Assembly: GCF_000737315.1 (NCBI RefSeq)
Contig: NZ_JMCB01000008.1
Location: 525,980-589,979 of the forward strand
Origin: Hyalangium minutum
GTDB lineage: Bacteria > Myxococcota > Myxococcia > Myxococcales > Myxococcaceae
DNA length: 64,000 nucleotides
Reading direction: 5' to 3'
The position numbers and the translations under genes are program-made. Positions 77 to 42,281 of this stretch are shown here, in pieces (the first letter of the stretch is position 1; each line of letters opens with the position of its first letter). The notes beneath the pieces are model-generated. The model was not told the DNA's origin and searched no databases. It worked only from the letters and a program-made list of their open reading frames with translations.

Positions 77-100
77 GCGGGTTCGATTGCCGTTGCCTCC
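77..100 (+). repeat. Degenerate tmRNA 3'-end copy (att-like remnant 1)
   Basis: GCGGG-TTCGATT-GCCGT-TGCCTCC: T-arm plus acceptor strand with mismatches; preceded by TCCAAGCG as in the copy at 24248. Confidence 0.5.
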
Positions 101-205
101 TGGCCGGAGTTCATGGGTCCGCTATCAAACATCCGGCCAGTCAAGCGCCTCATTCAACTCGCGCCTTTTGCCCGAGAAACTGTTGGACGGAAACAAGCAG
201 GCAAG

Positions 206-441
206 ACGGAAGACACCGAACAGGGGGTCGGCTCTTCGCTTGGAACTGGCGGTGCCGGTCTCCGAAACTGCGATGACGAACACATCCAGTGTTGTTCTCT
301 CGCGTCGACGAAGCGATTGACTGGATTAGGACTCACAAGGCTGAAGTGGCACTCGGAATGGTCGTTATCATTGCCGGAACCGCCTTCGTCATCACCACAG
401 GCGGCACTGGCGCGCTGATTCTCGCTCCTCTTGCACTCTAA
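206..441 (+). pseudogene. Internally deleted myxobacterial Cys-rich lipoprotein (toxin-like) remnant
   Basis: Frame 2 gives TEDTEQGVGSSLGTGGAGLRNCDDEHIQC; frame 1 then gives FSRVDEAIDWIRTHKAEVALGMVVIIAGTAFVITTGGTGALILAPLAL-stop (TAA 439-441). This is a C-terminus I recall from myxobacterial lipoproteins; the frame switch implies a deletion. Confidence 0.5.
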
Positions 442-453
442 CCTGACACGCCA

Positions 454-831
454 ATGACCTATAACTCAAACTTCGACATTGACGCCGTCATGAAGACCGT
501 TGGTACAGTGGGAGCAAAATACCCGGAGGGTACGCCGGAAGACGAGGCGCTCCGAATTGTCTCGCTGGCGTTGCTTTACGTTCGCGACATCCAGAAGTTG
601 GATGACTACCGTGAATATTTCCGGCGATTCTTCACCTACAAGCCTGTGACCATTGCTCAGACATTCGCGACAAGAGACGAAGCGGACACGTGGCTCGCCA
701 GCGGAGAAGCAAAGGACGGCGATCTGGTCAAAATCGCTGACCAAGGGTTCATCGTGATAGATGCGCTCAAGGGGTTGAAGTTCGTGCCGACGCGCCTGCC
801 GGAGGAACTGGCACCTCCAGGTTCGCAGTAG
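454..831 (+). CDS. Hypothetical protein, probable partner/immunity gene of the upstream remnant
   Basis: 125-aa ORF starting 12 bp after the remnant stop; soluble helical composition. Confidence 0.7.
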   Translation: MTYNSNFDIDAVMKTVGTVGAKYPEGTPEDEALRIVSLALLYVRDIQKLDDYREYFRRFFTYKPVTIAQTFATRDEADTWLASGEAKDGDLVKIADQGFIVIDALKGLKFVPTRLPEELAPPGSQ

Positions 832-927
832 GCCACGCTCGGGCGGTGCGGGCTACTGAGGTGGGCATTGCAGACCGTGTACGCGCGGCCCGCAAGTTCT
901 GGCCGCTCGCATCCGTGAGCGGCTCCC

Positions 928-998
928 CCCTGGTGGCCGCATGTACCCCCCGTGTGCCCCTCCAGCGGGGAATTGAGGGGTTTTGCTTCCGCCTTGAT
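928..998 (+). repeat. Shortened copy of the shared att arm
   Basis: Matches both ends of the arm at 18513-18668 (GGCCGCATGT..CCTCCAGCGGGGAATTGA and GGGGTTTTGCTTCCGCCTTGAT) with the middle missing. Confidence 0.75.
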
Positions 999-1023
999 GC
1001 GGGTTCGATTCCCGCCGCTCCCA
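999..1023 (+). repeat. tmRNA 3'-end copy (att-like remnant 2)
   Basis: GCGGG-TTCGATT-CCCGC-CGCTCCCA; no 5' half of the RNA upstream. Confidence 0.75.
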
Positions 1024-1087
1024 AGCAGAGCAACCCGCCGCTTTCAAGGCGCCGCCCTCTGAGAACGGCGGCGGCGCTCGCATTTTC

Positions 1088-1124
1088 GGGACCAAATCCG
1101 GTTTTTGGGACCCCAAAAGGACCA
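1088..1124 (+). other. GGGACC short direct repeats, possible integrase arm-type sites
   Basis: GGGACC at 1088 and 1107, GGACCA at 1119, 65-100 bp downstream of an att-like core. Confidence 0.35.
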
Positions 1125-1213
1125 AGCCGGAGACGGAAACGACATGAGCAAGACGTGGCTCGGCAAGTGGAAGCGTATAGGCGGGATACGCCTGGCTAGA
1201 CAACGCGGCCACC

Positions 1214-1859
1214 ATGAGTGGCCAGGTCATCATCCGAGACCTGGGGCTGGATGGAAACTCCGCCAACAACACCACCGCCGAGACGAATGGCATGGTGTTG
1301 CTGGCCGACAACGCTGTCGTGGAGAACACCCAGATCTTGAACATGCGGGGCTCTGGAATCCAGCTGACGAGCACCAACCGCGCGGGCACTCCAGCGAATG
1401 CACTCTCAAGCTCCTTCCCCACGCTGGGAGGGCGCATCGCGAAAAATGTCATTTCGAAGCCGGGCGGCCACGGCATCCTCATCAAGGGTGTGGACTGGCT
1501 CGTCGAAGTGCTCGACAACCAGATCGATGGCACCGGCCTGGATGGTATCGTCCTGGACAGCGGTAGCGTGTGTGTGGTGCGCGGCAATGACCTCTTCATG
1601 ATCGGCAAGAATGGGATCGTCACCAAGGCCCATGTGTTCATCACCACCGTAAAGTAGCCTCACCGTGATCGGGAACACCCTTGATGGCGTGGGGGGCACT
1701 GGGCTTGGGAACAATGGCCTTCATTATACCTATGGTGTCGCTCTTTCGAGCACTGGGACCTGGATCATCAAAGATAACTTGATTAACCATATCGGAAGCA
1801 TACACACGCCGTATTTGAAGACGTACCAGAAAACAGATTCGGAATGCAGCAGTTTCTAG
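1214..1859 (+). pseudogene. Right-handed beta-helix (pectin-lyase-like) protein fragment, frameshifted
   Basis: Repeated I/V-x-x-N-x-I..G-x-G-I patterns (VENTQILNMRGSGIQL, VLDNQIDGTGLDGIVL, VRGNDLFMIGKNGI) continue in a second frame (IGNTLDGVGG, IKDNLINHIG); no clear N-terminus. Confidence 0.55.
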
Positions 1860-1941
1860 GCAGCGCGCCGCCAGGCATCAGACATCCTTCCATTCAATTT
1901 CTCCATGCACTTTGAGTAGCTCGCCAGTATAGCGTGATGAC

Positions 1942-3384
1942 ATGAACCGATTCGCCGTCACAATGTTAGTGGTTACGCTGTCCGCGGGGGTGTGCGAGGC
2001 GTTGGGCTCCAGCCCGCCAGGCTACAGCGTTCAGATAACGCGCGCTGGCCTCGACCCCCTCATCAACGGCATTGCCAACCTGTCCGAGGCGTACGCCAAG
2101 AAAAGCCCTGCGCCGGACGCCACCATGGACATCTCTAACGTCCACTTGATCTTCAAAGGGATGAGCATCAGCACGTTGGAGCGGCCGGCGTTCGTGTACA
2201 CGTTGCAAGCACCGAACAAGCTCCTCACCAAGGTCACCTTGCCCAAGGTCATCATCAAGGGCCTCTTTCAGGCGTCGCGACGGACGCAATTCGAGACGCA
2301 AGAAGATCAAGGCAACGTCGACTTCACCCTGGTCAACGCCACGCTCACGCAGTCCGTCACCCTCGGCACGTTCGAGAACGGCATCCTGAGAGTCGACCAA
2401 CGCGACTGCAAAGCGACCCTCGGTTCGACCAACGTGGCCATCCAGAACAACCAACAATCATTCTCGGCCGATGCAGTCAGGGCAGCCGCCCCAGCGGAAC
2501 GGCAACTGCTCGCCACGAATCTGTGCAACGTGTTGACCCAGCTGCTGACGAAGAAAGTGGACAGGGCCCTGGCTCAATTGCCAAGCGTGTTGAGCTTCAG
2601 CAACAACGTGTCGTTGAAGGGGCAGCTCACGCCGGCCTTCACAGTCGACTCTGTCAAAGTGAACTTCTCCGAAGAGAGCATCACCGGCTTCGCCAGTGCC
2701 TGGGCGCCGGTCCTGTGCGACACGAGCGTGGCAGGCAGTCCGCAGGCCATCCTGACCGTGAGCGACGTCACGTTCAACAAGCTCTTGTACCTGGATTACA
2801 AGAGCGGCCTCTTGAACTTCACCCTCTCGCCGTCCAGCGCGCCCATCCTGTACCAGAAAATAACGTTGGACTGCGGCGAGTCCGGCGTGTGCCTGGGCAA
2901 CGTGGACAAGAAGTTGCCCGAGCGCTTCGGCAAGGACGCAAAGGTCGAGCTGCAGATGGAAGCGCCCATGGCGTCCACCCTCGAATTCAAAGAGAGCAGT
3001 ACCGCCATGACGGCCAGCTGGCGCGCCACTGTCTACATCACGAAGAATCAAGAGGGCGCCCCCCGGACGCTGGTGGCCAGCGGCGCTGTGTCCGCCAGCG
3101 GGCCGCTGCAAGCGAACATCCAAGGCGAGAAGGCCTACGGCAGGGTGAACATCGCGGAGCTCAAGCTCAAAGTCGATCAGCCCGAGGTGCAATCCTGGGA
3201 TCAGGACGCCCAGAGCCTGTTCAAGGACATCGTCCAAACCTACATCAACGATTTCTTCTTGAAAGACGGACTCTCGTTGCCGTCGGGACTGAGCGTCGAG
3301 AACGCGAGCATCAAATTCAGCCCCCACTGTGGGAAAGCGCCGTTCAGCTTGGACTACACGGGAATCTTGAGCAGCGAAGAATGA
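1942..3384 (+). CDS. Secreted BPI/LBP/CETP-family (TULIP) lipid-binding protein, two domains
   Basis: Signal peptide. PPGYSVQITRAGLD parallels BPI PGVVVRISQKGLD; RDCKATLG and NLCNVL give the conserved N-domain Cys pair; ILTVSDVTFNKLLYLDYKSGLLNFTL parallels the BPI C-domain start; 480 aa is full-length BPI size. Confidence 0.7.
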   Translation: MNRFAVTMLVVTLSAGVCEALGSSPPGYSVQITRAGLDPLINGIANLSEAYAKKSPAPDATMDISNVHLIFKGMSISTLERPAFVYTLQAPNKLLTKVTLPKVIIKGLFQASRRTQFETQEDQGNVDFTLVNATLTQSVTLGTFENGILRVDQRDCKATLGSTNVAIQNNQQSFSADAVRAAAPAERQLLATNLCNVLTQLLTKKVDRALAQLPSVLSFSNNVSLKGQLTPAFTVDSVKVNFSEESITGFASAWAPVLCDTSVAGSPQAILTVSDVTFNKLLYLDYKSGLLNFTLSPSSAPILYQKITLDCGESGVCLGNVDKKLPERFGKDAKVELQMEAPMASTLEFKESSTAMTASWRATVYITKNQEGAPRTLVASGAVSASGPLQANIQGEKAYGRVNIAELKLKVDQPEVQSWDQDAQSLFKDIVQTYINDFFLKDGLSLPSGLSVENASIKFSPHCGKAPFSLDYTGILSSEE

Positions 3385-3413
3385 CCCAAAGAGAGCGCTC
3401 CGAGGCCATGCTG

Positions 3414-3836
3414 CTATGGGGCGCGCGGCGCTCTGGCCCCAATGTCTTGCCCCATGGCACGGGACATCGGAGGGTTGCGCGCGGCGGCCCGCAGCGTCAC
3501 TCTCTTGCCCACGGGGGTGCCCTCGCTGTCCGAGCGCTCGGTGGGAATGGGCAGGGCGTAGTGACCATCCACGCCGCTCACCGCGACGCCCGCCACGGCG
3601 GTCCCGTTGATGTCCAGCGCTGTCACCTCCGCGCCCGCGACTGGCTGGCCTGAGAGGAGATCGAACACCTTGCCCTCGACCTGCACCGGCGCGAAGCACT
3701 GGGGGATATCCTTCCCGCGCACATGCTCACAGACGAGACCGGACGAGCATGAGCGTGGATCATCGAGTCTGCACTCGGTGTTGCCGACACAGGCCATCAG
3801 CAGTGCTGCAAGGGCCGGAATGATTCGCTTCAGCAT
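3414..3836 (-). pseudogene. C-terminally truncated lipoprotein with carboxypeptidase-regulatory-like (transthyretin-type) domain
   Basis: Lipobox LLMAC, Cys-rich start, VEGKVFDLLSGQPVAGAEV..DGHYALP motif; sequence loses coherence after RVTLRAAAR. Confidence 0.5.
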
Positions 3837-3948
3837 TCAGGAAGTCTCCTGGCATGAAGGGGCTCGAACGACCCGATCTGGCCCTGGTACTCCGGACGAA
3901 GGCAAGCGAAGTTGCCCCCCAGACAGCAGGCCCACTACTGTCGGAGCT

Positions 3949-6630
3949 TTGGTCTTCCAAAGGACCGCACGCGTGCGACGCTCCTCTCTCAGCCCTCGGC
4001 TCTCCCCCGCATCTTCCTCTTTCCTGGCCGTCCTGGCCCTGCTCGTCGCGGCTCCCGCCAGCGCGCAGTGGACTGCGGGGCCTGCCATGGCGGGTGCCCA
4101 CTCGCAGGGGGTGGCTGTCACCGATACCAACGGCCGCATCCACGTGATCGGCGGCAGCAGCACCACTGCCAGCGAGACCAGTCTTCACGAGGAATTCAAC
4201 CCCGCCACCAACACCTGGACCAGCCGCGCCCCCTTGCCCACCGCCAGTCGTGGCATGGGGGCCTCCCTGGGACCCGACGGACGCATCTACGTCTATGGTG
4301 GCTACAGCGGCACGGGCGCCACCGGCGCGTTCTACGCCTACAACCCCAGCACCAACGCGTGGACCACCCTGCCCTCCATGCCCACCCCTGTGTGGATGCC
4401 TCGGGGCGACTTCGCCTTGGACGGAAGGCTCTTCGTCTTCGGTGGAGAGAACAGCTCGGGCACCCCTCTCGACACGACCCAGATCTACAACCCCTCCAAC
4501 AACCTCTGGACCCTGGGTTCAAGCATGGGCCTGGCGCGCAAACAGCATGGGGTCTTCCGAGGCTCGAGTGGGAGCCTCTACGTCGTGGGCGGCCAGAACG
4601 CCAACGGCGTGGCGATCAGCTTGGTGTATTCCTACACCCCCTTCACCGGTACCTGGAACGTCGGCCCGAGCATGCCGGTGGCCATGAACTCCTTCGGCCA
4701 GGCCCTCTCGGCAGACCGCACCCGGTTCTTCGTGCTTGGAGGCTCGAGCAGCAACGGCAACGACAGCGCGCCCTACTTCAACAATGTCTACATGTTCAAC
4801 GAGGAGACCCATACCTGGTCGAGCCTCACCCCGCTCACCACGGGGCGCCGCGACCTGGCGGCCAGCGTGATCGGCTGCCGGCTGCGTGCCCTCGGCGGCA
4901 CCAACGGCACCCGCCTCGCGACCCATGAGGTGTTCCAGCTCACCGGCGCGCCAGACGACAATGGCAATGGTCTACCGGACTACTGCGAGAATGGGGCGGA
5001 CAGGGATGGCGACTCGGTGGCGGACGCCAACGACAACTGCCCTACCCTCTCCAACCCGGATCAGCGCAACACCGACGGTGACAGCCAGGGTGACGCGTGC
5101 GACGCCGACGATGACAACGATGGGGTGCCCGACACCACCGACAACTGCTCGCTGGTGGCCAACGCCAGCCAGGCCAACGCGGACGGCGACAGCCAGGGTG
5201 ACGCGTGCGACGCCGACGACGACAACGATGGGGTGCCCGATACCACCGACAACTGCTCGCTGGTGGCCAACGCCAACCAGACCAACACGGACGGAGACAG
5301 CCAGGGTGACGTCTGCGACGCCGACGACGACAACGATGGGGTACAGGACACCGTCGACAACTGCTCCCTGATCTCCAATTCGAACCAGACCAACACCGAC
5401 GGAGACAGCCAGGGCGACGTCTGTGACGCGGACGATGACAACGACGGAGTGGCGGACGTCACCGATAACTGCTCCCTCCTCTCCAATCCGGACCAGCGCA
5501 ACACGGACAATGACAGCCAGGGTGACATCTGCGACGCCGACGACGACAACGATGGGCTGCAGGACACCGTCGACAACTGCCCCCTGATCTCCAATTCGAA
5601 CCAGACCAACACCGACAGCGACAGCCAGGGTGACGCGTGCGACGCGGACGACGACAACGACGGCGTGGCGGACGCCACCGATAACTGCTCCCTCCTCTCC
5701 AACCCGGATCAGCGCAACACGGACAATGACAGCCAGGGTGACGTCTGCGACGCCGACGACGACGGCGATGGGGTGCCCGACACCACCGACAACTGCGTCC
5801 TGATCTCCAACCCGGGTCAGGCTGATCAGGACAACGATGGCCGAGGCGATGTCTGCGACAACGACGGCGACAACGACACCGTGTCCGATGCGCAGGACAA
5901 CTGCCCCACCGTCCCCAACGCGGACCAGACCGACTCGGATGGCGACAACCAGGGCAACGTTTGCGACCTGGATGATGATGGCGACGGAGTGGCGGACGCC
6001 ACCGACAACTGCTCGCTCATCGCCAACTCCGACCAGCGCAACACCGACGGAGATTTTGACGGTGACGTGTGCGACCAGGATGACGACAACGACAGCATCA
6101 CGGACAACGGGGACAACTGCCCCCTGGTGGTCAACACCGACCAGCGCAACACCGACGGCGACAGCACGGGCGATGCCTGCGACAGCGACAGTGACAATGA
6201 CGGGGTGCCTGACACCACCGATAACTGCGACTTCGTCTCCAACGCCGATCAGGCCAACGCCGACAACGACGCGCAGGGCAACGCTTGCGACTCGGACGAC
6301 GACAATGACACCGTGGCCGATGGCTCGGACAACTGCCCGCTCACCCCCAACACCGACCAGGCCGACAGCAACAGGAACGGCAAGGGCGACGCCTGCGACG
6401 TGGACAACGACACCGACAAGGACGGCATCGCCAACGCCGTGGACAACTGCCCCCAGGTGGCCAACCCTGACCAGGCGGACTCCGACACGGACGGCAAGGG
6501 CGACGCCTGCGAGGGCGACGGCGAGGGCGGAGGTTGCGGCTGCGGCGCGGGCCCTACCGGCGCCTCGAGCCTGATGGTGTGGGCGCTGGCCAGCCTCGCC
6601 CTGATGGCCCGTCGGCGCTTCGTCCGCTGA
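3949..6630 (+). CDS. Kelch-repeat + thrombospondin type-3 repeat surface protein with MYXO-CTERM (start uncertain)
   Basis: Signal peptide FLAVLALLVAAPASAQW; Kelch GG..Y/W repeats; 14 DNC..DxDxDxxGDxCD units; C-terminal GGGCGC-hydrophobic-RRR sorting motif. Confidence 0.85.
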   Translation: MVFQRTARVRRSSLSPRLSPASSSFLAVLALLVAAPASAQWTAGPAMAGAHSQGVAVTDTNGRIHVIGGSSTTASETSLHEEFNPATNTWTSRAPLPTASRGMGASLGPDGRIYVYGGYSGTGATGAFYAYNPSTNAWTTLPSMPTPVWMPRGDFALDGRLFVFGGENSSGTPLDTTQIYNPSNNLWTLGSSMGLARKQHGVFRGSSGSLYVVGGQNANGVAISLVYSYTPFTGTWNVGPSMPVAMNSFGQALSADRTRFFVLGGSSSNGNDSAPYFNNVYMFNEETHTWSSLTPLTTGRRDLAASVIGCRLRALGGTNGTRLATHEVFQLTGAPDDNGNGLPDYCENGADRDGDSVADANDNCPTLSNPDQRNTDGDSQGDACDADDDNDGVPDTTDNCSLVANASQANADGDSQGDACDADDDNDGVPDTTDNCSLVANANQTNTDGDSQGDVCDADDDNDGVQDTVDNCSLISNSNQTNTDGDSQGDVCDADDDNDGVADVTDNCSLLSNPDQRNTDNDSQGDICDADDDNDGLQDTVDNCPLISNSNQTNTDSDSQGDACDADDDNDGVADATDNCSLLSNPDQRNTDNDSQGDVCDADDDGDGVPDTTDNCVLISNPGQADQDNDGRGDVCDNDGDNDTVSDAQDNCPTVPNADQTDSDGDNQGNVCDLDDDGDGVADATDNCSLIANSDQRNTDGDFDGDVCDQDDDNDSITDNGDNCPLVVNTDQRNTDGDSTGDACDSDSDNDGVPDTTDNCDFVSNADQANADNDAQGNACDSDDDNDTVADGSDNCPLTPNTDQADSNRNGKGDACDVDNDTDKDGIANAVDNCPQVANPDQADSDTDGKGDACEGDGEGGGCGCGAGPTGASSLMVWALASLALMARRRFVR
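5032..6510 (+). repeat. Coding tandem repeat, about 14 x 108 bp (TSP3 units)
   Basis: 36-aa unit DNCxxxxNxDQxxxDxDxxGDxCDxDDDNDGxxDxx repeated. Confidence 0.9.
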
Positions 6631-6780
6631 GACCTGAGCCCTGGATGGGGCCTTGCTCACAAGCCCAGCCCTCTGACATCCCCCTGCTGCGAGGACAGCC
6701 TGGGCAGGGGTGTGCATCATTCTCCTGCTCGCCAGCTCATTCCTTCCGTGGGGCCATCCCGGCCCCTCGAAAGTGAAACC

Positions 6781-9072: not shown

Positions 9073-9192
9073 GCCTGGAAACGCCCTCTGATAACGCGTG
9101 TTTTCGATCGCGGGGATTGCGGCGAAGCGCGGGATCGTCCACGGCTGGGGACTCTCCGTCCGCCGCCGTGGACGGTTTGTGGTTATAGGGGC

Positions 9193-9549
9193 TCACCGAC
9201 GCACCCCCGCTCGCGTGAGGGCCTCAGCCAGGGCCTGGGCAGCGTCTCCCACGGCCTCCAGAGCGCGAGTCCCCTCAAACATGCTGCGCATGGCTTCGTC
9301 GTCGCCCACTTCGATGGAGAGCAGCTCGCAGGCAGCAACGGCCATGCTGAAGTTGTTGAAGGCCAACTTCACGGCCGCCGGCGTGTTCCCTCCGTACTCA
9401 GCGGCGATTTCCGCCACCGCCAGGTACCAACACTCGGTGGCCCGGCGCTGCGCCTCCCATGCCTCCCGGTAGTGCCGAGCCGCCTCCTTCAACTGCTGGG
9501 CCGCGTTCCGGAAGTTCGCCTCGGCCTTGTTCAGGTTGGGGGTGCTCAT
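9193..9549 (-). CDS. Hypothetical helical protein, possibly phage/element derived
   Basis: 118-aa Ala-rich ORF with ATG start, next to a tRNA fragment. Confidence 0.55.
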   Translation of the reverse strand: MSTPNLNKAEANFRNAAQQLKEAARHYREAWEAQRRATECWYLAVAEIAAEYGGNTPAAVKLAFNNFSMAVAACELLSIEVGDDEAMRSMFEGTRALEAVGDAAQALAEALTRAGVRR

Positions 9550-9610
9550 TCCGCGTTCGCCCGCCGGGCCTTGGCAATAGCTTCCATTGTTTTTACGAGG
9601 GGTTGCGAAG

Positions 9611-9660
9611 CACGCCGAGGGGGACTTGAACCCCCAACCCTTGGCTTCGAAGGCCGATGC
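9611..9660 (-). tRNA. tRNA-Arg(TCG) 3' half only (att-like remnant, not a functional gene)
   Basis: Minus strand GCATCGGC-CTTCGAA-GCCAA-GGGTT-GGGGG-TTCAAGT-CCCCC-TCGGCGTG: anticodon arm, T-arm and acceptor 3' strand; no D-arm or matching 5' acceptor strand upstream. Confidence 0.75.
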
Positions 9661-10260
9661 CGCTGGTTAGCGCCCTTCAGCTGCCAGCACGTGCCTACCT
9701 CGGGCGCATTGCTCGCGGCGGTGGTGCTGCGCACGGTGCGATGGGAGGCGATGCGGCTGCTGCTTCGCTTCTTCCGGGTACTGCTCTTCACTCTGGCGGC
9801 GCCCATGGGCCCCCAAAAGCGAGAGGGCCTGTCGCCGGGGTAGAGTCCCGACAACAAGCCCCTCTCAGGACAGCAGGCGCGGCCAAGCGCCAGCGCTGGC
9901 CTCACCCTCCGCCCAACAGGCTCACGCCGGACTCGCATCCGGGCATGAGTACCCCTATCGGGTGCTCGGGTGCGCATACAGCCTTAGCACGGCCAAGACC
10001 GGCCGTCCTAGCGCGCCCCGTGGTGCTCTACCCACCCCTGCGCGGGGTGGCACCCAGTTCGCACACGGGCTGCACAGGTTTGGCCGCCTGCGCGTGGCAC
10101 GGCGTTACCCGTGCCCCCGTCACGCGCTCAACACTGCGCCCCTGCGCGCACGGGCGTCAAGAGGGTGCTCGCGGCCACCCCTTGTCGCGCAGTCCTCACG
10201 CGGGGTTACTGCGCAGGCACAGCAGGTGCTACGCGCGCGTGGGCCCGCGTGCGTGTCCTC

Positions 10261-12021: not shown

Positions 12022-12095
12022 TGGCGCCTCCTGTCCGCTGGCTGCTGCGTGAAATTTCAGGTGCGCACGGGTGCAATGCGAAGCGCCAGGCGGCG

Positions 12096-32124: not shown

Positions 32125-32628
32125 TAAGACAGATAGGAGCTGTGCTGAGGGTGAGGGCTGGTGCAGAGGGGCCGAGGAGGGCCGAGGACGACCGCAGAGG
32201 GGGACATGTGGGCTGTGTGCCAAGCCGGTGGAGAGGCCGCGCAGCCACTTTGAGGTACACGCCTACCCCAGCCGCCTTCCCAGGAGGGGCGCGGCAGGTG
32301 CCTGGCTCTCTTGGCTGGCTGGGGCGGCTTGAGCTTCAACACCACGCGCTCTGGGGCGGCCCTCGCGCAGGGGCCAGGTGCTCACTCGCCGGGGGCAACC
32401 CCAGGTGCTCCACTATCGCTCTCACCCCTCCTGCTCCCTTCACAGACGCCAACACCCTTAAGCCTGCCTCCACACCTCAAGCACGCCAACACTTCCAGGG
32501 CGAACCTCCTTTTCAGCAACCCGGCCCAGTTCAAACGGGGTGTGCGCTCCTTCCTCGGCTCCTCCCCCGTCGCGGCAAAGGCGGGGCTCTCTTCCGTAAG
32601 CCCCGGCTCCGCCCCTGCTTGAGGGAGC
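32125..32628 (-). mobile_element. IS91-like terminus plus transposase 3' remnant
   Basis: PRKERTPRLNWAGLLKRRFALEVLACLRCGGRL; terminus TAAGACAGATAGGAGCTGTG and internal GGTACACGCCT..AGCCGCC.TCCCA shared with 20890-21040. Confidence 0.75.
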
Positions 32629-32902
32629 GCCTCGGGCGACAGGTGCGCGTACTTCATTATCGAACGGCGGCTATTTTTAGGTGCGCCGTAGAGTGCTTCC
32701 GCAGCCGACCCGGGCAGGTCCACGCTCCTTTCTCGTCCCCTTGGGCAGCCCCCACGCCACACCAAGCCGTCCGGCGCACGTTGATCAGGCGCCCGGATTC
32801 CTCACGGGATTAGACGGCGCCATCTTGCCAACCCAACAGTGCCTTGATGCCCTAGAAAAGCATCAGCTACTCAATAGACCATAGGGCGGGTATATTGCTC
32901 TT

Positions 32903-35089: not shown

Positions 35090-35092
35090 GTC

Positions 35093-35923
35093 ATGGACCG
35101 CTTCCCGCGTCCCTCTAAGCCAAGAGGTTTTGATGCTTCGGTCAAGGCACACAAGGATCGAGTTCAATCTCACTTCAAGAAAAAGAAGCCGGGCAAATGG
35201 AAGTTTGAGGATATTTGGAGCAAGTACAAGCGGAACATCGCAGTCGCCTCACATGGAAAATGTGGCTACTGTGAAGTACGCGTTACTGGCTCCCAACATG
35301 GAGACGTCGATCACTTCTACCCTAAGGGAGAAGTGTGGGCACTCCATGATGACCGTACCAAATGGGGTCAAGAGATTCCTGGGCTATCTAAAGTCAAAGG
35401 GAGAAAAAAGAAGCTCCTTTCGCGCAGAGGCTACTGGTGGCTAGTCTACGAATGGAAGAACTACGTACTGGCATGCCTTGTGTGTAATCAGCAATGGAAA
35501 CTCTCGTTCTTTCCGGTACGTGCCAAGCGCCGCAAACTTCCTCCTTTGCCGCGTAGTAAAGAGAAACCCCTACTGCTAAACCCTTTCTTTGGTCCAGATC
35601 CAGTGAGGCACCTTCAATTCATCATTACAGGTGCAATCATTCCCTATAAAGGTAGCCGTTACGGTTTCGAGACTATCAGAACATGCGGGCTAGATCGCCC
35701 CAGTCTTACTCTCGATAGACATGAAAAAGCACAACGGGCCTACTATCTCCTCAAGAAGTTGACGACGTGTTTGCCGACGACTCCCGAGTATGACCTCACG
35801 CTCAAAGACTTTTTCCTTATGGGAAGAAAGGAAAATGTTCACTCTGGAATGATCCGCGCCATCTTTGAACAGGAGACTGCTATGAAGTGGAAGCAGCTTG
35901 AGAAACGGTTCGCTATCCCCTAG
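35093..35923 (+). CDS. HNH nuclease (PtuB/TIGR02646-like)
   Basis: KCGYCE..DVDHFYPK..YWWLVYEWKNYVLACLVCN..LLLNP..GLDRPSL; 3 bp after the ATPase stop; AT-rich. Confidence 0.85.
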   Translation: MDRFPRPSKPRGFDASVKAHKDRVQSHFKKKKPGKWKFEDIWSKYKRNIAVASHGKCGYCEVRVTGSQHGDVDHFYPKGEVWALHDDRTKWGQEIPGLSKVKGRKKKLLSRRGYWWLVYEWKNYVLACLVCNQQWKLSFFPVRAKRRKLPPLPRSKEKPLLLNPFFGPDPVRHLQFIITGAIIPYKGSRYGFETIRTCGLDRPSLTLDRHEKAQRAYYLLKKLTTCLPTTPEYDLTLKDFFLMGRKENVHSGMIRAIFEQETAMKWKQLEKRFAIP

Positions 35924-36157
35924 CACCTACCCTGGGGTGCGGTTGCCACGATAGGCGAGGCAGATCTTAACAGGTGTAAGTGGTGGCCCTTATGCTGGAG
36001 CAATTGACGCAGGCCGTTATCAGGCCTTCCACGAAGAAAAGCCTGATGCACAAACAGATTGCTCGCCAGTTGGGCATTTGAGAGATCATCGTCAACGCAT
36101 AGACGGGATAAGTGGCCACGCACTCCCCGGACGCATGTGCCTCCAGTGTGCCTTGCT

Positions 36158-36182
36158 GAGGGTTCGATTCCCACCGCCTCCA
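36158..36182 (+). repeat. tmRNA 3'-end copy (att-like remnant 5)
   Basis: GAGGG-TTCGATT-CCCAC-CGCCTCC-A preceded by a very short arm relic GCATGTGCCTCCAGTGTGCC. Confidence 0.7.
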
Positions 36183-36344
36183 TTCTGAGAAGCCCAGCAA
36201 ACTTGATGATGGAGAAGCGGGCGTCCCGGCTCAGCCCACCTCGTCTCTGGAGGCGCTGGTCCACAGCGTCACGGAGTGAAAACCGGCCGACGGGGAATTC
36301 TCACGGAGTTGGGAGCGACGCGTGAGGGCCGTGCAGGGCTCAGT

Positions 36345-36398
36345 GCATAGGAAGGACAGGAGCCCTCTTGGGCGTAGCGGGCGGGAGCAGAGCGGGAG
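36345..36398 (-). mobile_element. IS91-like terminus copy
   Basis: GCATAGGAAGGACAGGAGC..TTG..CGGGCGGGAGCAGAGCGG aligns with 20887-20938. Confidence 0.7.
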
Positions 36399-36554
36399 GA
36401 TTGCCCCTGTTGGGCCGCATGTGCCCCCGGTGTAACCCTCCAGCGGGGAATGGAACGGGACGAGACGGGACGGAGCGGAGGAACGATCCACTGTGAGATC
36501 AAGGCATTAGCCGGTAACAGCGCGACCTGCTTGGGGTTTTGCTTCCGCCTTAAT
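36399..36554 (+). repeat. Shared att arm, full-length copy
   Basis: Near-identical to 18513-18668. Confidence 0.85.
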
Positions 36555-36578
36555 GCGGGTTCGATTCCCGCCGCCTCC
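36555..36578 (+). repeat. tmRNA 3'-end copy (att-like remnant 6)
   Basis: GCGGG-TTCGATT-CCCGC-CGCCTCC. Confidence 0.8.
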
Positions 36579-36700
36579 CTCCCGAGAGGCCTCGCAATCT
36601 CACCGGGTTGCTGGGCTTTCTCTTGGGCCTCGTGACTCCGGCGTCTCTGGCCGGAGCGGCGTGGAGCTGGGGCACGGTGTTCGACGCGGGCGCTTGATGC

Positions 36701-37312
36701 TCAGTACAGCGTCGCCTTCACCCGGCCGGGCAACTCGCGGTCGTACTCGCCGCCGTCGAAGTTATCCGGGCTCAGCGCCTCGAGGATGGAGCCGGGGCTT
36801 GGGAACTCGGCGCGGGTGACGTGCCGGGCCGGGTCCCAAAGCCTGGAGCGGACCAACGCGCGGCTGCATTGGAAGTAGACCGTCTCCACGGTGATGCGCA
36901 GCACGGAGCGCGGCGCCTTCCCATCGAAGGTGAAGCGCTCCAGCATGGACGGCTCGATGACGATGCTCGCCCGGCCGTTGACACGCAGGGTTTCGTTCAC
37001 GCCCGGGACGAAGAACAGCAGCGCGACGCGCGGATCCGCCAGGATGTTCCGCAGCGAGTCCATGCGGTTGTTGCCTCGGCGATCGGGCAGCAGCAGCGTG
37101 CGCGTGTCCTCGATGACCACGAACCCGGCGGGGTCTCCTCGCGGCGAGGCATCCAGCCCTCCAGGGCCGGACGTGGCGAGGACCATGAACGGCGATCGCT
37201 CGATGAAGGGCCGGTATGCGGGGTGGAGGTGGTCCACCTCCTTGAGCACGGACGACTTCCCGGGAACCCCGTACAGGCGTTCGAGCGTCTCCACATCGTT
37301 CACGGTCTTCAT
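36701..37312 (-). CDS. Pyridoxamine 5'-phosphate oxidase-like FMN-binding protein
   Basis: SPFMVLAT..DASPRGDPAGFV..LPDRRGNNRMDSLRNI..ETLRVNGRA..YFQCSRA. Confidence 0.9.
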   Translation of the reverse strand: MKTVNDVETLERLYGVPGKSSVLKEVDHLHPAYRPFIERSPFMVLATSGPGGLDASPRGDPAGFVVIEDTRTLLLPDRRGNNRMDSLRNILADPRVALLFFVPGVNETLRVNGRASIVIEPSMLERFTFDGKAPRSVLRITVETVYFQCSRALVRSRLWDPARHVTRAEFPSPGSILEALSPDNFDGGEYDRELPGRVKATLY

Positions 37313-37428
37313 CCGAGGGCGCCTCCTGGGTCCTTTTAGGCCTTTAAAATGGCCATGTCACACGCGGCATCGGCTGCGTCGTCCTGGGAATGGAAGGGCA
37401 CTTCGCCCCCCAGAACGAGGACCTGCAC

Positions 37429-37890
37429 ATGAAGCCCCGGATGAATGCCTTCGCGGTCGCGCCGGACGCCGTCAACCTCATGTTGGATTTCAGCAAGAAG
37501 GTGGAGGCCCTGGGGCTGGAGCCGAGCCTCCGCGAGCTCGTCAAGATCCGCTCGTCCCAGCTCAATGGCTGCGCCTTCTGCATCCACATGCACACCCGCG
37601 ACGCCCGCGCACATGGGGAGACCGAGGAGCGCATCTACCTTCTGGACGGCTGGCGTGAGTCGCCGCTGTACACCGACCGCGAGCGGGCGGCCCTGGGCTG
37701 GACCGAGGCCCTGACGCTCGTCTCCACGACACATGCCCCGGATGAGGACTACGCTGCGCTCAAGCCGCACTTCACCGAAGAGGAGATCGTGAAGCTGACC
37801 CTCATGATTGGTGTCATCAACTCCTGGAACCGGTTCGCCATCGGCTTCCGGTCCATCCACCCGGTGACCGCTCGCAGTGAAGCCGCCTGA
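37429..37890 (+). CDS. Carboxymuconolactone decarboxylase/AhpD family protein
   Basis: ELVKIRSSQLNGCAFCIHMH CxxC motif; WRES..ERAAL..INSWNR. Confidence 0.9.
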   Translation: MKPRMNAFAVAPDAVNLMLDFSKKVEALGLEPSLRELVKIRSSQLNGCAFCIHMHTRDARAHGETEERIYLLDGWRESPLYTDRERAALGWTEALTLVSTTHAPDEDYAALKPHFTEEEIVKLTLMIGVINSWNRFAIGFRSIHPVTARSEAA

Positions 37891-38755
37891 TTCAAATCCT
37901 GCGGACGTCTTCGACCCGCTCCGCCCCCGGCTGCTCCGCATCGCGTACCGGATGCTGGGCATCGTCGCGGAGGCGGAGGACGTGGTGCAGGAGGCGTATC
38001 TGCGTTGGCACCAGACGAACCGCGACGTCGTGCGGGACGCCGAGGCCGTGCTCGTCCGCACGGTGACGCGCCTGTGCCTGGACGTCCTGAAGTCCGCGCG
38101 CGTGCGGCGCGAGGAGTACGTGGGGACCTGGCTTCCAGAGCCCATCCTCGAGACAGTGGAGGGCGATGACTTGACGCTGACCCTGATGATGGCCCTGGAG
38201 CGCCTGTCCCCGCTGGAGCGCGCCGCGTTCCTCCTGCACGACGTGTTCGGCATGGACTTCGAGCAGGTGGCGAAGGCGCTCGACCGCGCTCCCGCGGCGT
38301 GCCGCCAGCTCGCCAGCCGGGCGCGGGACCATGTGCAGGAGGCCCGGCCCCGCTTCCCCGTGACGGAGGCGAAGGGCCACGAGCTGGCCTCGGCGTTCCA
38401 TGCCGCGTCCCGGAGCGGCGACACGCAGGCGCTCCAGGCCCTGCTGGCCCAGGACGCCATCCTGTACGCCGACGGCGGCGGCAAGGTGAAGGCGGTCCTC
38501 AATCCCATCTACGGCCGGGAGAAGCTGGTGCGCTTCTTCGAAGGGGTGTGGCGCATTCCAGCCGTGGGCTCGGCGCAGCTCGTGCACGAGGGCACCATCG
38601 ACGGCCTGCCCGCGTACGTCACGATGGATCCGGATGGAATGCTGCAGACCACGGCGTTTGCCATCGAGGACGGCCGGATCGTCGCCCTCTACGTCACGCG
38701 CAACCCCGACAAGCTGAAGGGCATCCGGCGCGCGGTGGTGGGCGAGTCGTCCTAG
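37877..38755 (+). CDS. ECF sigma-70 factor, SigJ/ECF41 type with SnoaL-like extension
   Basis: AYRMLG..AEDVVQEAYLRW, YVGTWLPEP, ERAAFLLHDVF, DGGGKV, RNPDKL. Confidence 0.9.
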   Translation: MKPPDSNPADVFDPLRPRLLRIAYRMLGIVAEAEDVVQEAYLRWHQTNRDVVRDAEAVLVRTVTRLCLDVLKSARVRREEYVGTWLPEPILETVEGDDLTLTLMMALERLSPLERAAFLLHDVFGMDFEQVAKALDRAPAACRQLASRARDHVQEARPRFPVTEAKGHELASAFHAASRSGDTQALQALLAQDAILYADGGGKVKAVLNPIYGREKLVRFFEGVWRIPAVGSAQLVHEGTIDGLPAYVTMDPDGMLQTTAFAIEDGRIVALYVTRNPDKLKGIRRAVVGESS

Positions 38756-38907
38756 GAGGCTTCAGCGCGCGGCGAAGAACTCGCGCGCGAAGGTTACAAA
38801 AGTCTCACTGGTGAGACTTGGCCGCCTGTGGGATTCCAGCGGTAGCGGTTCGAGAGAGCTGGGGACGCTCCGGCATCATCCTCCCCGGAGTACAGTGGGC
38901 ACTCCCG

Positions 38908-39790
<883 letters not shown>

Positions 39791-39795
39791 GCAGG

Positions 39796-39831
39796 GTGCT
39801 CAACGCCTTTCGGCATCACGGCAAGGGGGAC
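39796..39831 (+). CRISPR. Solitary 36-bp CRISPR-type repeat (no array, no cas genes in the window)
   Basis: GTGCTCAACGCCTTTCGGCATCACGGCAAGGGGGAC with a GCC-TTTC-GGC hairpin; matches my recall of a myxobacterial type I repeat except near the 3' end. Confidence 0.6.
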
Positions 39832-40296
39832 CCTGCCAGCTAACCCGGCCCCGCCCAGGGGACTGAGTGCTCTCCCTTCAGGTGCGTGGCAGGCGCCGAG
39901 GCCTGTGGGGTGTCTTGAGCGCCTCAACACCCCGCTGCCTTATGGGGCCCTCGCGCCGGCGCCAGCCTCTCACCTGCCGTGGCCAGGCCCAGGTGCTTCA
40001 CCATCACGCAGCGTCACGGGACAGCGTGACGGTCACGCGTCCGATGGAGGCAGCGCGGAGCACCGCTGGAACTCCGGCGGAGTCCTCACGGATATCGACT
40101 GGCCATCCTGCGCCAGTCCGCAGCGCGGCGCTACGTGGGGGGCGCAGGGACGTGGCGAGTGTCCAGCCGTCAGCCTCGGGCGCGAGGCCGCCCCCGCAGG
40201 GTGCCCGGAGGTGAAGGACAGTACCACCCGGTGGCTCCTCCTCTTCTCCGTGTCTGCCCTCTACCCTGATCCCCTCCTCGCAAGAGCGGGTGACAC

Positions 40297-41652
40297 ATGC
40301 TGCCATGGCGGATGCTCTGGAAGGCCGAAGCGCTGTTCCTTGCGTTGTTGGTGGGGTGCGCCAGCGTCCCTCGGGTCCCCGTCGTGGAAGACATCGGCCA
40401 GGGTATGGCCGTCGTCCACGTGCCCCGCACCGCTGACCTGCACCCGGTGGAACTGGAGGAAGAGGAATTCCAGCAGGCGGTGAGGCGCCTTGCGCGCGAG
40501 GTGCGGCTGACAGGCACGCCGCGCCAAACGGCGGAGCGGGCTTTTCAAATGGGCCCGCAGAGCGGCTACTACCACTACCTGATGCGGGAAAAGAAGATGG
40601 CGCCAGATGGGCCCGGTGAGTCCTGGGACGGCACGTTGACGAAAGAAGACTTGGAGCTGGCGGAGCGCTATCGGCTCTGGTGCCAGAGCGCATACAACTT
40701 CTATGGAGATTGTCTTGGGGGCGCGCTGGTGGCAGGGCGCTACCTGGACATGCAAGGCCGCTACGTTTGGGCGCTGGCCATGAGCAAGAGCCCGGTGCTG
40801 GACGAGATGAAAAAGGCGCTCGGGGAGATGGTGGAGTTCCGCGCGCTCATCAGCGCGGCCCTGTGGACGTTGGGTTCGATGCTGCTGATCATGGCCCTGA
40901 CTCCCGTGGCGCCTGGGCTGGTGGCTGTGCTGGGCGTGGGGCTGCTCCTGTATGTGGGCTATGACACGCTCCACAACCTCGTGACGGGCTGGGCTGAGTT
41001 GACGGAGGCGGCAGAGGCCGCGACCACCTTCGAGCAGCTCCGCGAGGCGGGCGAGAGGTTCGGGAAGATCATCGGGCGAGAGGCGGCGCGCGCGTTCGCC
41101 ATGCTGCTGGTTGCGGCGATTGGCTCCACGGCGCAGCTGTTCGCGGCGAAGGTGCCGACGCTGCCCGGCTCGGCTCAGGTGGCCATGCAGGCCGAGGGGC
41201 AGGCAGGATTCTCGCTGCCCGCGCTGGGGGCTGTGCAGGAGATCGCGGTGGCTGCCGAGGGCGTGAGTATCACGCTTCCCGCGAACGCGGTGGCGATGGC
41301 GGCGCGGGGCAGTGGCGGCAAGGCTCCTTGTGTCGAGACGCACCACATCGCCACCATCTGCAACGACACGTCCACCGCACGCGGGGGCGCGTGGACACCG
41401 CGGTTCCGGAAGGTCTTCGCCAAGGCGGGAATGTCGATGGAGAATCCTGCGAACAAGATGCCTCTGCAGGGGCATTACGGCCCGCACCCCGAGCGGTATC
41501 ACCAGATAGTCTTCAATGCACTGGATGACGCGACGCGGACCTGTCGCAGCGTCGTCACGTGCCGGGCGAAGCTGATGGAGGCCCTCAAGGATCTGGCTCA
41601 GGACATCGCAACCCCGGGAACAGAGCTGAACCAACTCGTCACCCGGCAGTAG
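40297..41652 (+). CDS. SitA-like lipoprotein polymorphic toxin with C-terminal AHH nuclease
   Basis: LLVGC lipobox; hydrophobic central helices; ETHHIAT..GGAWTPRF..PANK..GHYGPHPERYH AHH signature. Confidence 0.85.
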   Translation: MLPWRMLWKAEALFLALLVGCASVPRVPVVEDIGQGMAVVHVPRTADLHPVELEEEEFQQAVRRLAREVRLTGTPRQTAERAFQMGPQSGYYHYLMREKKMAPDGPGESWDGTLTKEDLELAERYRLWCQSAYNFYGDCLGGALVAGRYLDMQGRYVWALAMSKSPVLDEMKKALGEMVEFRALISAALWTLGSMLLIMALTPVAPGLVAVLGVGLLLYVGYDTLHNLVTGWAELTEAAEAATTFEQLREAGERFGKIIGREAARAFAMLLVAAIGSTAQLFAAKVPTLPGSAQVAMQAEGQAGFSLPALGAVQEIAVAAEGVSITLPANAVAMAARGSGGKAPCVETHHIATICNDTSTARGGAWTPRFRKVFAKAGMSMENPANKMPLQGHYGPHPERYHQIVFNALDDATRTCRSVVTCRAKLMEALKDLAQDIATPGTELNQLVTRQ

Positions 41653-41672
41653 CCGCGCTACATACGGAGCCC

Positions 41673-42224
41673 ATGTCCCAGCGTTTCTTCGAACTCGCCG
41701 ACGATGTGAATGTCCCGCACCGATGGCACCTTGACATGCCGACGGACAGTCACACTAAGCAAGTGGACGACGGACAGTTCAGGATCGGGGTACCCGTTCA
41801 TGTCAAAGAACGCCTGAGAATCCCCGTCGAGATCGCAGGCAAGCCGCTGGACTTCACAGAAGCGGGCATCCGCATCCCGGTGGTCCATGTCCGAGTTGCG
41901 TCCATCTTCGCGGAACTGGCCCCGGACGACGTGCAACTGATCCCCGTGGATGTGGACGGCCAACCGGATCAGTACCTCATCCTCGTGGCCACACGTCTCA
42001 TCCCCTGTATCGACGAGAATGCTTCGCGGTTCAGCCGCCCGGGGGAGCCTGATCCAGTCAGGCGGTATTCCATCATGTACGCACTGCGCATCGACAAGTC
42101 CAAGGTCGGAAGCGCCAAGGTGTTCCGGTGCGAGGGGTGGCCGGGCCCGCTGATCGTCTCTGGGGAGATCAAGGAGGCCTTGGATCGCATGGCCGCTACC
42201 GGCACGAGGTTCGAGGAGGTCTAA
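41673..42224 (+). CDS. Imm11-like immunity protein
   Basis: RWHL..PLDFT..PVVHVRVASIF..VQLIPV..CIDE..LRID..VFR..LIVSGEIKEAL; directly downstream of the AHH toxin. Confidence 0.8.
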   Translation: MSQRFFELADDVNVPHRWHLDMPTDSHTKQVDDGQFRIGVPVHVKERLRIPVEIAGKPLDFTEAGIRIPVVHVRVASIFAELAPDDVQLIPVDVDGQPDQYLILVATRLIPCIDENASRFSRPGEPDPVRRYSIMYALRIDKSKVGSAKVFRCEGWPGPLIVSGEIKEALDRMAATGTRFEEV

Positions 42225-42256
42225 TTCGCTCACCTGCGGTTTTCGCACCGCCCGGC

Positions 42257-42281
42257 GTGGGTTCGATTCCCGCCGCCTCCA
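42257..42281 (+). repeat. tmRNA 3'-end copy (att-like remnant 7, right border of the mosaic)
   Basis: GTGGG-TTCGATT-CCCGC-CGCCTCC-A. Confidence 0.8.

Follow-up and report, generated by a model that had tools for sequence, protein, structure and literature searches.

A decayed and apparently orphan tandem array of ssrA-type attachment-site scars in Hyalangium minutum

A decayed tandem array of ssrA-type attachment (att) scars, real and apparently orphan, occupies much of a 64,000-nucleotide stretch of the Hyalangium minutum genome (hereafter the window). Seven short copies of a tmRNA 3′ end (the cores) are quite probably the scars of islands or prophages that were stacked by ssrA-type integrases and later lost these enzymes, leaving an array that no longer has ssrA at its head. 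Direct support comes from the cores and their identity to the tmRNA end, from the conserved arms, from vestiges of integrase genes, and from the presence of the same integrase family beside the ssrA gene of a relative. Together with a downstream (P′) arm, these features bear out a preliminary description of the stretch in which the cores were taken for tyrosine-integrase att scars. The locus shows a myxobacterial chromosome gathering anti-phage systems, a SitA5/Imm11 kin-discrimination pair, and many accessory genes via one recombination site.

The cores were first recognized as a series of same-strand copies running from position 77 to 42,281, and this series proved to be sound. A pattern search with up to three mismatches recovered six plus-strand copies of GCGGGTTCGATTCCCGCCGCCTCCA (copies 2 to 7 in Table 1), each with one or two mismatches, and no copy on the minus strand of the window; chance expectation, estimated from 100 shuffles, was zero copies. 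The seventh, leftmost core reads GCGGGTTCGATTGCCGTTGCCTCCT and is degenerate, with four mismatches, and was recovered by a core profile (E 6.7e-7) that found nothing further in the window, in the 19.7 kb upstream of it, or at the corresponding loci of four relatives. All seven align only to positions 334/337–361 of the 362-nt tmRNA of Stigmatella aurantiaca and, as originally described, have no 5′ half. They are thus displaced tDNA 3′ fragments in direct orientation, of the kind that bounds islands.

That the core represents the end of a tmRNA, as first proposed, is also well supported. The 25-mer is an exact match to positions 337–361 of the bona fide S. aurantiaca tmRNA, an RNA with the tag ANDNVELALAA and a 5′ end, GGGGGCG, that provides a G3-U70 pair. 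Among 120 exact copies of the 25-mer in IMG/VR viral contigs, 55 lie in tmRNA genes, 65 are free fragments and none is in a tRNA, and relaxed-E Rfam searches with the cores returned tmRNA as the best clan match, with the T-arm and acceptor strand alone aligned. An origin from a tRNA gene, such as tRNA-Ala (which also possesses G3-U70 and A73), is extremely improbable in light of these three results, even though 25 bases of T-arm and acceptor strand by themselves cannot separate tRNA-Ala from tmRNA and close homologues of the integrase target other tDNAs (tRNA-Leu in H. rubrum and another T-arm in Cystobacter). Judging from Stigmatella, a member of the same family, the cores presumably also correspond to the end of H. 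minutum’s own ssrA. Two further Rfam alignments, a “mini-tmRNA” with a 326-nt deletion and a permuted-tmRNA match after the core at 36,158 (E 0.21), were judged to be due to chance.

Table 1. Features of the array, its cargo and its right flank (positions in the window).
Feature	Position	Strand	Remarks
Class-B-type upstream arm of core 1		+	CAGATGCTCCAAGCG; begins 47 nt past the stop of a CarboxypepD_reg-like gene
Core copy 1	77–101	+	21/25 identical to tmRNA 3′ end; degenerate
Short class-A arm	935–998	+	Without the 78-nt middle part; core 2 follows
Core copy 2	999–1023	+	2 mismatches; short class-A arm before it
T2-type downstream (P′) arm	1024–1200	+	AGCAGAGCAACCCGCCGCTTTCAAG, hairpin, GGGACC repeats, then ATGAGCAAGACGTGG...GTATAGGCGGGATA
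Long class-A arm and core 3	18466–18693	+	Tandem 10-mers GAGACGGGAC
Core copy 3	18669–18693	+	1 mismatch; long class-A arm before it
OLD/AriA/GajA-like ATPase-TOPRIM protein	18840–20861	+	
Kinase-nucleosidase-kinase protein	21080–24019	+	PD-T4-6-like kinase domains, PN-superfamily effector domain
Class-B arm and core 4	24190–24272	+	...TACGGGACCTACGCTCGACCG...CGCCAGAAGTTCCAAGCG
Core copy 4	24248–24272	+	1 mismatch; class-B arm before it
Integrase C-terminus vestige, ~24 aa	25692–25763	-	62–75% identity to L023, L098 and L148 integrases; marginal
Repeat element	32261–32788	-	IS91/ISCR-type transposase C-terminus (32438–32591) fused to integrase remnant (32589–32788)
Septu-type PtuA, HNH-ATPase	32903–35089	+	Full-length match to PDLC00288
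Septu-type PtuB	35093–35923	+	Pairs with PtuA
Core copy 5	36158–36182	+	2 mismatches; then partial T1-like flank TTCTGAGAAGCCCAGCAA
Long class-A arm and core 6	36399–36579	+	
Core copy 6	36555–36579	+	1 mismatch; long class-A arm before it
T1-type P′ arm	36580–36700	+	Decayed copy of L067 terminator hairpin and integrase 3′ end; PNPOx gene truncates it
Last ~12–20 integrase codons	36638–36676	-	Within the T1 flank after the core at 36555
SitA5-family polymorphic toxin, AHH nuclease domain	40297–41652	+	
Imm11 immunity protein	41559–42224	+	
Class-C arm end and core 7	42241–42281	+	TTTCGCACCGCCCGGC, as in L067 and L138
Core copy 7	42257–42281	+	1 mismatch; class-C arm end before it; right end of array
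Conserved chromosomal flank	42402–47371	+	FHA-GAF-sigma54 activator, small protein, Ser/Thr kinase with PEGA domain, 233-aa protein

Another line of evidence is provided by the sequences on either side of the cores, which behave as conserved attP arms: upstream arms of three classes (A, B, and C) and downstream arms of two types (T1 and T2) recur in other genomes and in metagenomes. Three of the cores bear a conserved class-A arm of 65–200 nt that reappears, in unrelated surroundings, in six further Myxococcaceae genomes; these arms are 90–96% conserved and end exactly at the discriminator base. Within the window, positions 18,513–18,692 and 36,399–36,578 are 96% identical, and the block at 36,183–36,579 consists of the two arms that remain of an island. 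The T2 arm is conserved after cores in loci L013 and L138 and in nine metagenome contigs. The decayed hairpin of the T1 arm, after the core at 36,555, was not called by a simple terminator scan. The tandem GGGAC 10-mers of classes A and C are probably arm-type integrase sites, and the repeats of the long class-A arm and the CATGTGCCCCCAGTGTGACCC motif are likewise candidates for integrase arm sites.

Scans for these arms placed them consistently away from tmRNA genes. A class-A 33-mer gave ten matches in a genome collection, with none in a tmRNA gene and no integrase among the flanking ORFs tested, and the T2 flank gave nine metagenome matches, all of them lacking an intact tmRNA; GenBank phages had no BLAST match to the class-A unit. 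None of the 12 T2-flanked cores and none of the 10 other class-A cores is in a tmRNA gene. It might be argued that units so short (65–230 nt), sharply bounded, and conserved (90–96% across genera), with several copies per genome away from integrases, form an autonomous family of short repeats or small-RNA genes that merely have a tRNA-like 3′ end and are independent of any integrase. This is very unlikely, however, as a 201-nt class-A unit folds no better than its shuffles (z 0.19), the variable middle part and the copy-number-variable 10-mers resemble protein-binding arms rather than structured RNA, and full integrase-bearing elements have the same arms.

The att-scar reading draws directly on those elements, since related cores elsewhere adjoin members of one tyrosine integrase family. 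In locus L067, the layout is arm, core, terminator, and integrase (Pfam Phage_integrase, 5.9e-30), and the same layout occurs in L023 and L098; integrase remnants adjoin cores in L012 (79% over 62 aa) and L007. In S. aurantiaca, a homologous integrase, P0206 (71% identity), lies directly beside an intact ssrA, with its end 16 nt from the 3′ end of that gene and an HTH_17 excisionase-like gene alongside. A Cystobacter locus, L151, contains a complete 8-kb element in the order core, T1, and integrase, then cargo, then a class-A-like arm and core; with its integrase intact, this element has fragments alone at its ends. The integrase homologue of M. xanthus, with no tDNA nearby, likewise uses a different target. 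During the scan of 150 loci, the single ARAGORN “tmRNA”, in L015, was rejected, as its tag was implausible, it overlapped an EamA gene, and Rfam did not see it. Taken together, these loci identify a Myxococcaceae-wide family of ssrA/tDNA-specific integrases whose recognizable att arms can be used for mapping islands in large genomes.

Within the window itself, the same family survives only as debris. The preliminary description had stated that no integrase is left, and this holds for an intact one: neither the annotated ORFs nor 150 stop-to-stop segments (≥51 aa) of unannotated DNA contained a recombinase domain. Three short vestiges nevertheless remain, all on the minus strand, 12–65 aa in length, and derived from one tyrosine-integrase family (Table 1). 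The remnant at 32.7 kb is internally deleted, and the repeat element to which it belongs has a second copy at 16,206–16,407. Two of the three are weak on their own, the 36.6-kb vestige having an E of 9.8 and the 25.7-kb vestige an E of ~1e-4 (42-kb database). The vestiges at 25.7 and 32.7 kb adjoin no core, which means that some block boundaries have been lost and not all are clean; the “seven integrations” originally proposed can thus be read as a rough count only.

The cargo of the blocks was originally described as retained defense and toxin genes, and this was confirmed by the Septu pair, the OLD-family ATPase with its kinase-nucleosidase protein, and the SitA5/Imm11 pair. The defense blocks have a low-GC base composition, with a GC content of 0.56 at 19–21 kb and 0.50–0.54 across the Septu block (32,903–35,923). 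The blocks also contain redox, metabolic, and regulatory genes.

To the right of the array, ordinary chromosomal genes begin soon after the last core, as first noted. From 42,402 onward, ~120 nt past core 7, the window shows nucleotide homology with H. gracile, H. rubrum, S. aurantiaca, and M. xanthus, four relatives in which this flank is syntenic. Each relative examined has different DNA upstream of the right-flank gene, and neither ssrA nor a core occurs within 10 kb of the orthologous site in any of the four. A metagenome contig, L138, has only a kinase gene in common with the flank (78% identical), with a core 0.9 kb upstream. On the left, the CarboxypepD_reg gene was considered as the orthologue of the M. 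xanthus neighbor and rejected, the similarity being 24% identity only and arising from repeats.

One expectation of the preliminary description, that of a single ssrA hotspot with ssrA upstream on the plus strand, was not supported. Neither ARAGORN nor Rfam (at gathering thresholds) detected a tRNA or tmRNA gene in the window, and ARAGORN, Rfam, and BLAST with the Stigmatella tmRNA found no tmRNA pieces beyond the cores in the window or the 19.7 kb upstream, which is free of tRNA genes as well; across this range, then, the array has no intact tDNA at its head. It is conceivable, though improbable, that the array is still attached to an intact plus-strand ssrA more than 19.7 kb upstream, with the DNA between being one large recent island. 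Every fragment is a 3′ end and all lie on one strand, an arrangement to be expected downstream of ssrA, the variability of the region among relatives marks it as plastic, and myxobacterial prophages can exceed 20 kb. However, the 19.7 kb upstream contains an OEP gene, a two-component pair, kinases, peptidases, and a phosphatase, and no integrase, phage genes, core, or tmRNA. The ssrA of S. aurantiaca, located between M16 peptidase genes and an island, is 1.7 Mb from the activator orthologue, and the genes flanking it are absent from the 84 kb examined. Moreover, the leftmost core is the most decayed of the seven, which argues against simple accretion at ssrA, where the leftmost would be the youngest.

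If the cores are att scars, as favored here, the array could have arisen as follows. Tyrosine integrases would use the T-arm and acceptor end of ssrA as their recombination site, each element having an attP in which the 25-nt tmRNA end lies between an upstream arm (A, B, or C) and a downstream arm (T1 or T2) that would supply a terminator; in the T1 type, the integrase gene would come next, reading towards the core. Repeated integrations would stack elements head to tail, and deletions would then have stripped out the integrases along with most of the backbone, leaving the cargo and the cores in place. Because no intact ssrA lies at the head within 19.7 kb, the array would either have been split from ssrA by rearrangement or have grown at displaced fragments, which still contain the complete recombination core and might act as secondary attB sites. 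The order of these events is presumptive, as is any present-day recombination activity.

It is tempting to extend the second of these routes and suggest, more doubtfully, that the array is a self-standing landing pad, with fragments far from ssrA acting as secondary attB sites that go on capturing ssrA-type elements, and with blocks that, between functional arms and cores, could still undergo excision, shuffling, or transfer in trans through the integrases of resident relatives. The Cystobacter element between fragments, and the T2-flanked and other class-A cores outside tmRNA genes, 12 and 10 respectively, point in this direction. If true, myxobacteria would build clusters of defense and toxin genes at decoy att arrays without putting the essential tmRNA gene at risk. 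The missing ssrA poses a testable question, namely whether displaced tDNA fragments are integration sites in their own right, and, if they are, island finders that depend on both an intact tDNA and an integrase would overlook arrays of this kind.

Arrays of ssrA scars are already known, and that of H. minutum is unusually long and without an adjoining tmRNA gene. In tmRNA-gene islands, the crossover made by a tyrosine integrase falls within the 3′ end of ssrA; the element makes the gene whole again and leaves a displaced 3′ fragment, and repetition of the process generates same-strand fragments that bound islands. Among tDNA targets, the tmRNA gene shows the highest enrichment (Williams 2003; Islander, PMC4383910). 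Only 4 of 3919 Islander islands lie in arrays of three or more (PMC4383910). An Islander array requires an intact tDNA as well as an integrase for each island, whereas H. minutum presents seven fragments, integrase vestiges alone with no intact copy, and no tmRNA gene within 19.7 kb.

A second parallel is with the fda site of Streptococcus thermophilus, where mobilization of CIMEs, along with ICE accretion, has reportedly been demonstrated. Like those CIMEs, the H. minutum blocks are bounded by att sites, lack recombination genes of their own, and lie in tandem with related elements, and by analogy a related integrase could in principle mobilize them in cis or in trans; the two cases differ in host, integrase family, and target. 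Also comparable are the ssrA island of S. aurantiaca DW4/3-1 and loci L067, L023, and L098, which have the same 25-nt core, the same integrase family with the integrase reading towards the core, and akin arms with GGGAC repeats and GTGTTGCAYGT / CATGTGCCC motifs. These elements, however, keep an integrase of ~400 aa and an HTH_17 gene where the window has only 12–65-aa vestiges, and the Stigmatella core sits in an intact ssrA, unlike the cores of the window.

Finally, defense islands and integration hotspots are known to gather anti-phage systems, and the clustering of Septu, an OLD-family ATPase, kinase-effector proteins, and toxin-immunity pairs in variable hotspot DNA resembles them. In H. 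minutum, by contrast, many metabolic and regulatory genes of ordinary appearance lie among the defense genes, and explicit, repeated att scars mark the hotspot.

Six copies of a 25-nt core, GCGGGTTCGATTCCCGCCGCCTCCA, were found in the window by a pattern search allowing up to 3 mismatches, starting at 999, 18669, 24248, 36158, 36555 and 42257, all on the + strand and each with 1–2 mismatches; 100 shuffled sequences gave no match at this threshold. A seventh copy, at 77–101, carries 4 mismatches and was recovered with a profile built from the cores (E 6.7e-7); the same profile detected no additional copy, whether in the window, in 19.7 kb upstream of it or in the loci of four relatives. ARAGORN and Rfam found no tRNA or tmRNA gene in the window. 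The core could be identified in Stigmatella aurantiaca DW4/3-1, reached via an integrase homologue, where ARAGORN predicts a 362-nt tmRNA with a tag ending in ANDNVELALAA. The consensus 25-mer is exactly positions 337–361 of this tmRNA, whose GGGGGCG 5′ end gives the G3-U70 pair inferred in the preliminary description. All window copies align solely to positions 334/337–361, so that none contains anything beyond the T-arm, acceptor strand and discriminator base. A tRNA was also considered as the source of the cores. The exact 25-mer is present in more than 120 IMG/VR contigs, and among 120 copies retrieved and placed by local ARAGORN, 55 lay in tmRNA genes, none in tRNA genes and 65 outside any gene; together with the S. 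aurantiaca match, this placement makes a tRNA origin very unlikely.

The sequences adjoining the cores resemble attachment-site arms and recur at comparison loci (L-numbers) from other genomes, viral contigs and metagenomes. An upstream arm termed class A is common to the cores at 999, 18669 and 36555; 18513–18692 and 36399–36578 are 96% identical, and the arm at 999 is without a 78-nt middle part. This arm holds two or three GAGACGGGAC units in tandem and stops exactly at the discriminator base, with unrelated flanks beyond. In a scan of one genome per species, a 33-mer from it occurred ten times in six other Myxococcaceae genomes (Hyalangium MAGs, Pyxidicoccus caerfyrddinensis and Myxococcaceae MAGs), the arm being conserved at 90–96% over 175–230 nt. 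A class-B arm precedes the cores at 77 and 24248 and occurs in metagenome contigs too, while the end of a third type, class C, known from L067, L138 and L143, precedes the core at 42257. Downstream, the core at 999 is followed by the T2 arm, which has a hairpin, GGGACC repeats and a conserved end ~150 nt out, and which is also found 3′ of cores in L013, L138 and nine metagenome contigs, there joined to class A, B or C arms. The T1 arm lies 3′ of the core at 36555, and partially 3′ of that at 36158, and matches the hairpin and T-run 3′ of the core in L067, L012 and L015. In L138, positions 8900–9110 comprise a class-C arm, in which ACAGGACGGG is repeated six times in tandem, then a core and T2 flank; they precede by 0.9 kb a kinase with 78% identity to one located 8 kb upstream of the window. 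Between 2 and 6 such 10-mer repeats are present, depending on the locus. In a soil metagenome contig, L145, a group II intron (4375–5851; Rfam RF02003, RF00029) lies amid three tmRNA-end cores.

The integrase that accompanies these arms is preserved elsewhere. In the IMG/VR locus L067, an arm with GGGAC repeats is followed by the core, T1 and a 402-aa tyrosine integrase reading towards the core (Pfam Phage_integrase, 5.9e-30), and close homologues in L023 and L098 are positioned in the same way. The family ranges over Myxococcus, Corallococcus, Pyxidicoccus, Cystobacter, Stigmatella and Hyalangium; more distant homologues include one in H. rubrum that targets a tRNA-Leu and one in M. xanthus with no tDNA nearby. 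In S. aurantiaca, 16 nt separate the end of the homologue (71% identity) from the 3′ end of an intact ssrA; with HTH_17, VapE-like and TIR genes behind the integrase, this is a classical attL arrangement. This locus (L148; CP002271, 7.57–7.59 Mb), in which the intact ssrA has two M16 peptidase genes on one side and, on the other, an island encoding the integrase, HTH_17, VapE-like and TIR-domain proteins and IS66, provides a useful reference attL for the family. In Cystobacter ferrugineus (L151; MPIN01000002), one element of 8 kb, whose integrase is intact, has both ends visible, in the order core-type fragment, T1, integrase, HTH_17, HNH (HNH_5) and AbiJ cargo, class-A-like arm and second fragment. 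Both bounding fragments are copies of another T-arm fragment, CACGGGTTCGAATCCCGTCGGGGACA, and no intact tRNA or tmRNA was found nearby; apparently, it is a complete element lying between fragments only. C-terminal integrase remnants adjoin the core in L012 (79% identity over 62 aa) and L007.

In the window, no recombinase or transposase domain was found among ~40 candidate genes, and a scan of 150 stop-to-stop segments, each of 51 aa or more, from all unannotated stretches of 1–40.3 kb yielded just two Pfam matches, both unrelated, and no integrase. The preliminary description held that integrases had been present and then deleted, with none left; short vestiges (see table) support the first part, and the second is true of intact genes only. 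The vestiges also show that cores were lost at some island boundaries, and the proposed count of up to seven integrations is therefore only approximate. The vestige at 32589–32788 is fused to the C-terminus of an IS91/ISCR-type transposase (NF052416, E 6.7e-4), encoded on the − strand of a repeat of ~200–370 nt. The repeat precedes class-A arms in L010 and L013 as well, and may thus belong either to the backbone of the islands or to a recombinase-carrying IS91-type element.

Blocks between cores, integrase vestiges and small repeats in the window
Feature	Position	Strand	Remarks
Block	102-1023		One small ORF
Block	1024-18693		Beta-helix fragment, BPI/LBP-like protein, two large Kelch/TSP3/PKD proteins, short-chain dehydrogenase (SDR), SnoaL protein, LysR regulator, aldo-keto reductase, TMEM175-like channel
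Block	18694-24272		OLD/AriA/GajA-like ATPase-TOPRIM protein, kinase-nucleosidase-kinase protein
Block	24273-36182		RCC1 and F5/8 proteins, AhpC, DsbA, alcohol dehydrogenase, ISCR/integrase remnant, Septu pair
Block	36183-36579		Two arms, nothing else
Block	36580-42281		PNPOx, CMD protein, ECF-like sigma factor, two unknown ORFs, solitary CRISPR repeat, SitA5 toxin with Imm11
C-terminal integrase piece	25692-25763	-	24 aa, marginal
Internally deleted integrase piece	32589-32788	-	tblastn E 1.8e-4
T1 and last integrase codons	36580-36700		Directly 3′ of core at 36555; protein match weak alone, E 9.8
Transposase repeat	32261-32628, 16206-16407, 21085-21269		First two copies 90-96% identical
34-nt motif	24011-24044, 28960-28993, 32128-32161		Just 3′ of three genes
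CRISPR repeat	39796-39831		Rfam CRISPR-DR23, 46 bits (gathering score 45)

GC content falls to 0.56 and 0.50–0.54 in the two defence segments, compared with ~0.66 elsewhere. The single CRISPR repeat of the last island block lies 6 nt past the stop of an unannotated 229-aa ORF and upstream of the SitA5 gene; no second repeat of this type occurs in the window within 3 mismatches, nor an exact copy in IMG/VR. RNA anti-CRISPRs have been described that consist of solitary CRISPR repeats carried on mobile DNA. The 34-nt motif, GACGAATAGGA...GGTTGAGGGTGAGGGCTGG, has a similar counterpart, GGGATAGAGG...GGAGGGTGAGGGCAGGAGC, 3′ of the T2 arm in metagenome loci L142 and L147.

The reading as an ssrA hotspot is not borne out. 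It predicts an intact copy of this gene, on the + strand, at the left end of the array, but 19.7 kb upstream contains none by ARAGORN, Rfam, the core profile or BLAST with the Stigmatella tmRNA, and encodes an outer-membrane efflux protein, a two-component pair, kinases, peptidases and a phosphatase. Moreover, a hotspot model expects the leftmost core to be the youngest, whereas it is the most decayed. To the right of the array, H. gracile, H. rubrum, S. aurantiaca and M. xanthus become homologous to the window at 42402, ~120 nt past the last core; the homologous stretch includes an FHA-GAF-sigma54 activator gene, and the array thus ends at a synteny break. The regions upstream of the activator orthologue are all different among these relatives, and in none of the four do the 10 kb preceding it contain a tmRNA, tRNA or core. 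In S. aurantiaca, the orthologue is at 5.83–5.86 Mb and ssrA at ~7.58 Mb, and none of the ssrA-flanking genes (two M16 peptidases, an S8 peptidase and an OmpA-like protein) occurs in the 84 kb examined here. All ten further class-A cores and all twelve T2-flanked cores from other genomes and metagenomes lie outside any tmRNA gene, and several other contigs carry two or three same-strand cores. The window was placed at 426215–490214 of the H. minutum contig JMCB01000008.1 (GCA_000737315.1). On this contig, the same 20,378 bases (L001/L002) were obtained at two coordinate ranges 99,765 apart, a difference identical to the contig's length less the coordinate of the window's end; a later look-up fits the first range. 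This is probably a book-keeping artefact and no real 100-kb duplication.

The locus is thus likely to be a tandem array in decay, its cores being the scars left by site-specific integration of the ssrA type, and it is probable, if somewhat less so, that this array is now detached from ssrA, if it was ever attached. A rearrangement could have severed it from ssrA, or later elements could have entered displaced fragments, which keep the full 25-nt core; this second route is in keeping with the Cystobacter element, whose integrase is intact and which has fragments alone on both sides.

Blocks without an intact integrase that are bounded by att cores resemble the CIMEs of Streptococcus thermophilus, which are likewise integrase-less and att-bounded. 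Tandem islands at ssrA, mapped by their displaced 3′ fragments, are also established (Islander, PMC4383910, citing Williams 2003), and in the Islander survey, whose criteria demand an integrase per island, only 4 out of 3919 islands belonged to arrays with three or more members (PMC4383910). With both phenomena already known, the window array is a rather extreme case of a known phenomenon and not a new mechanism.
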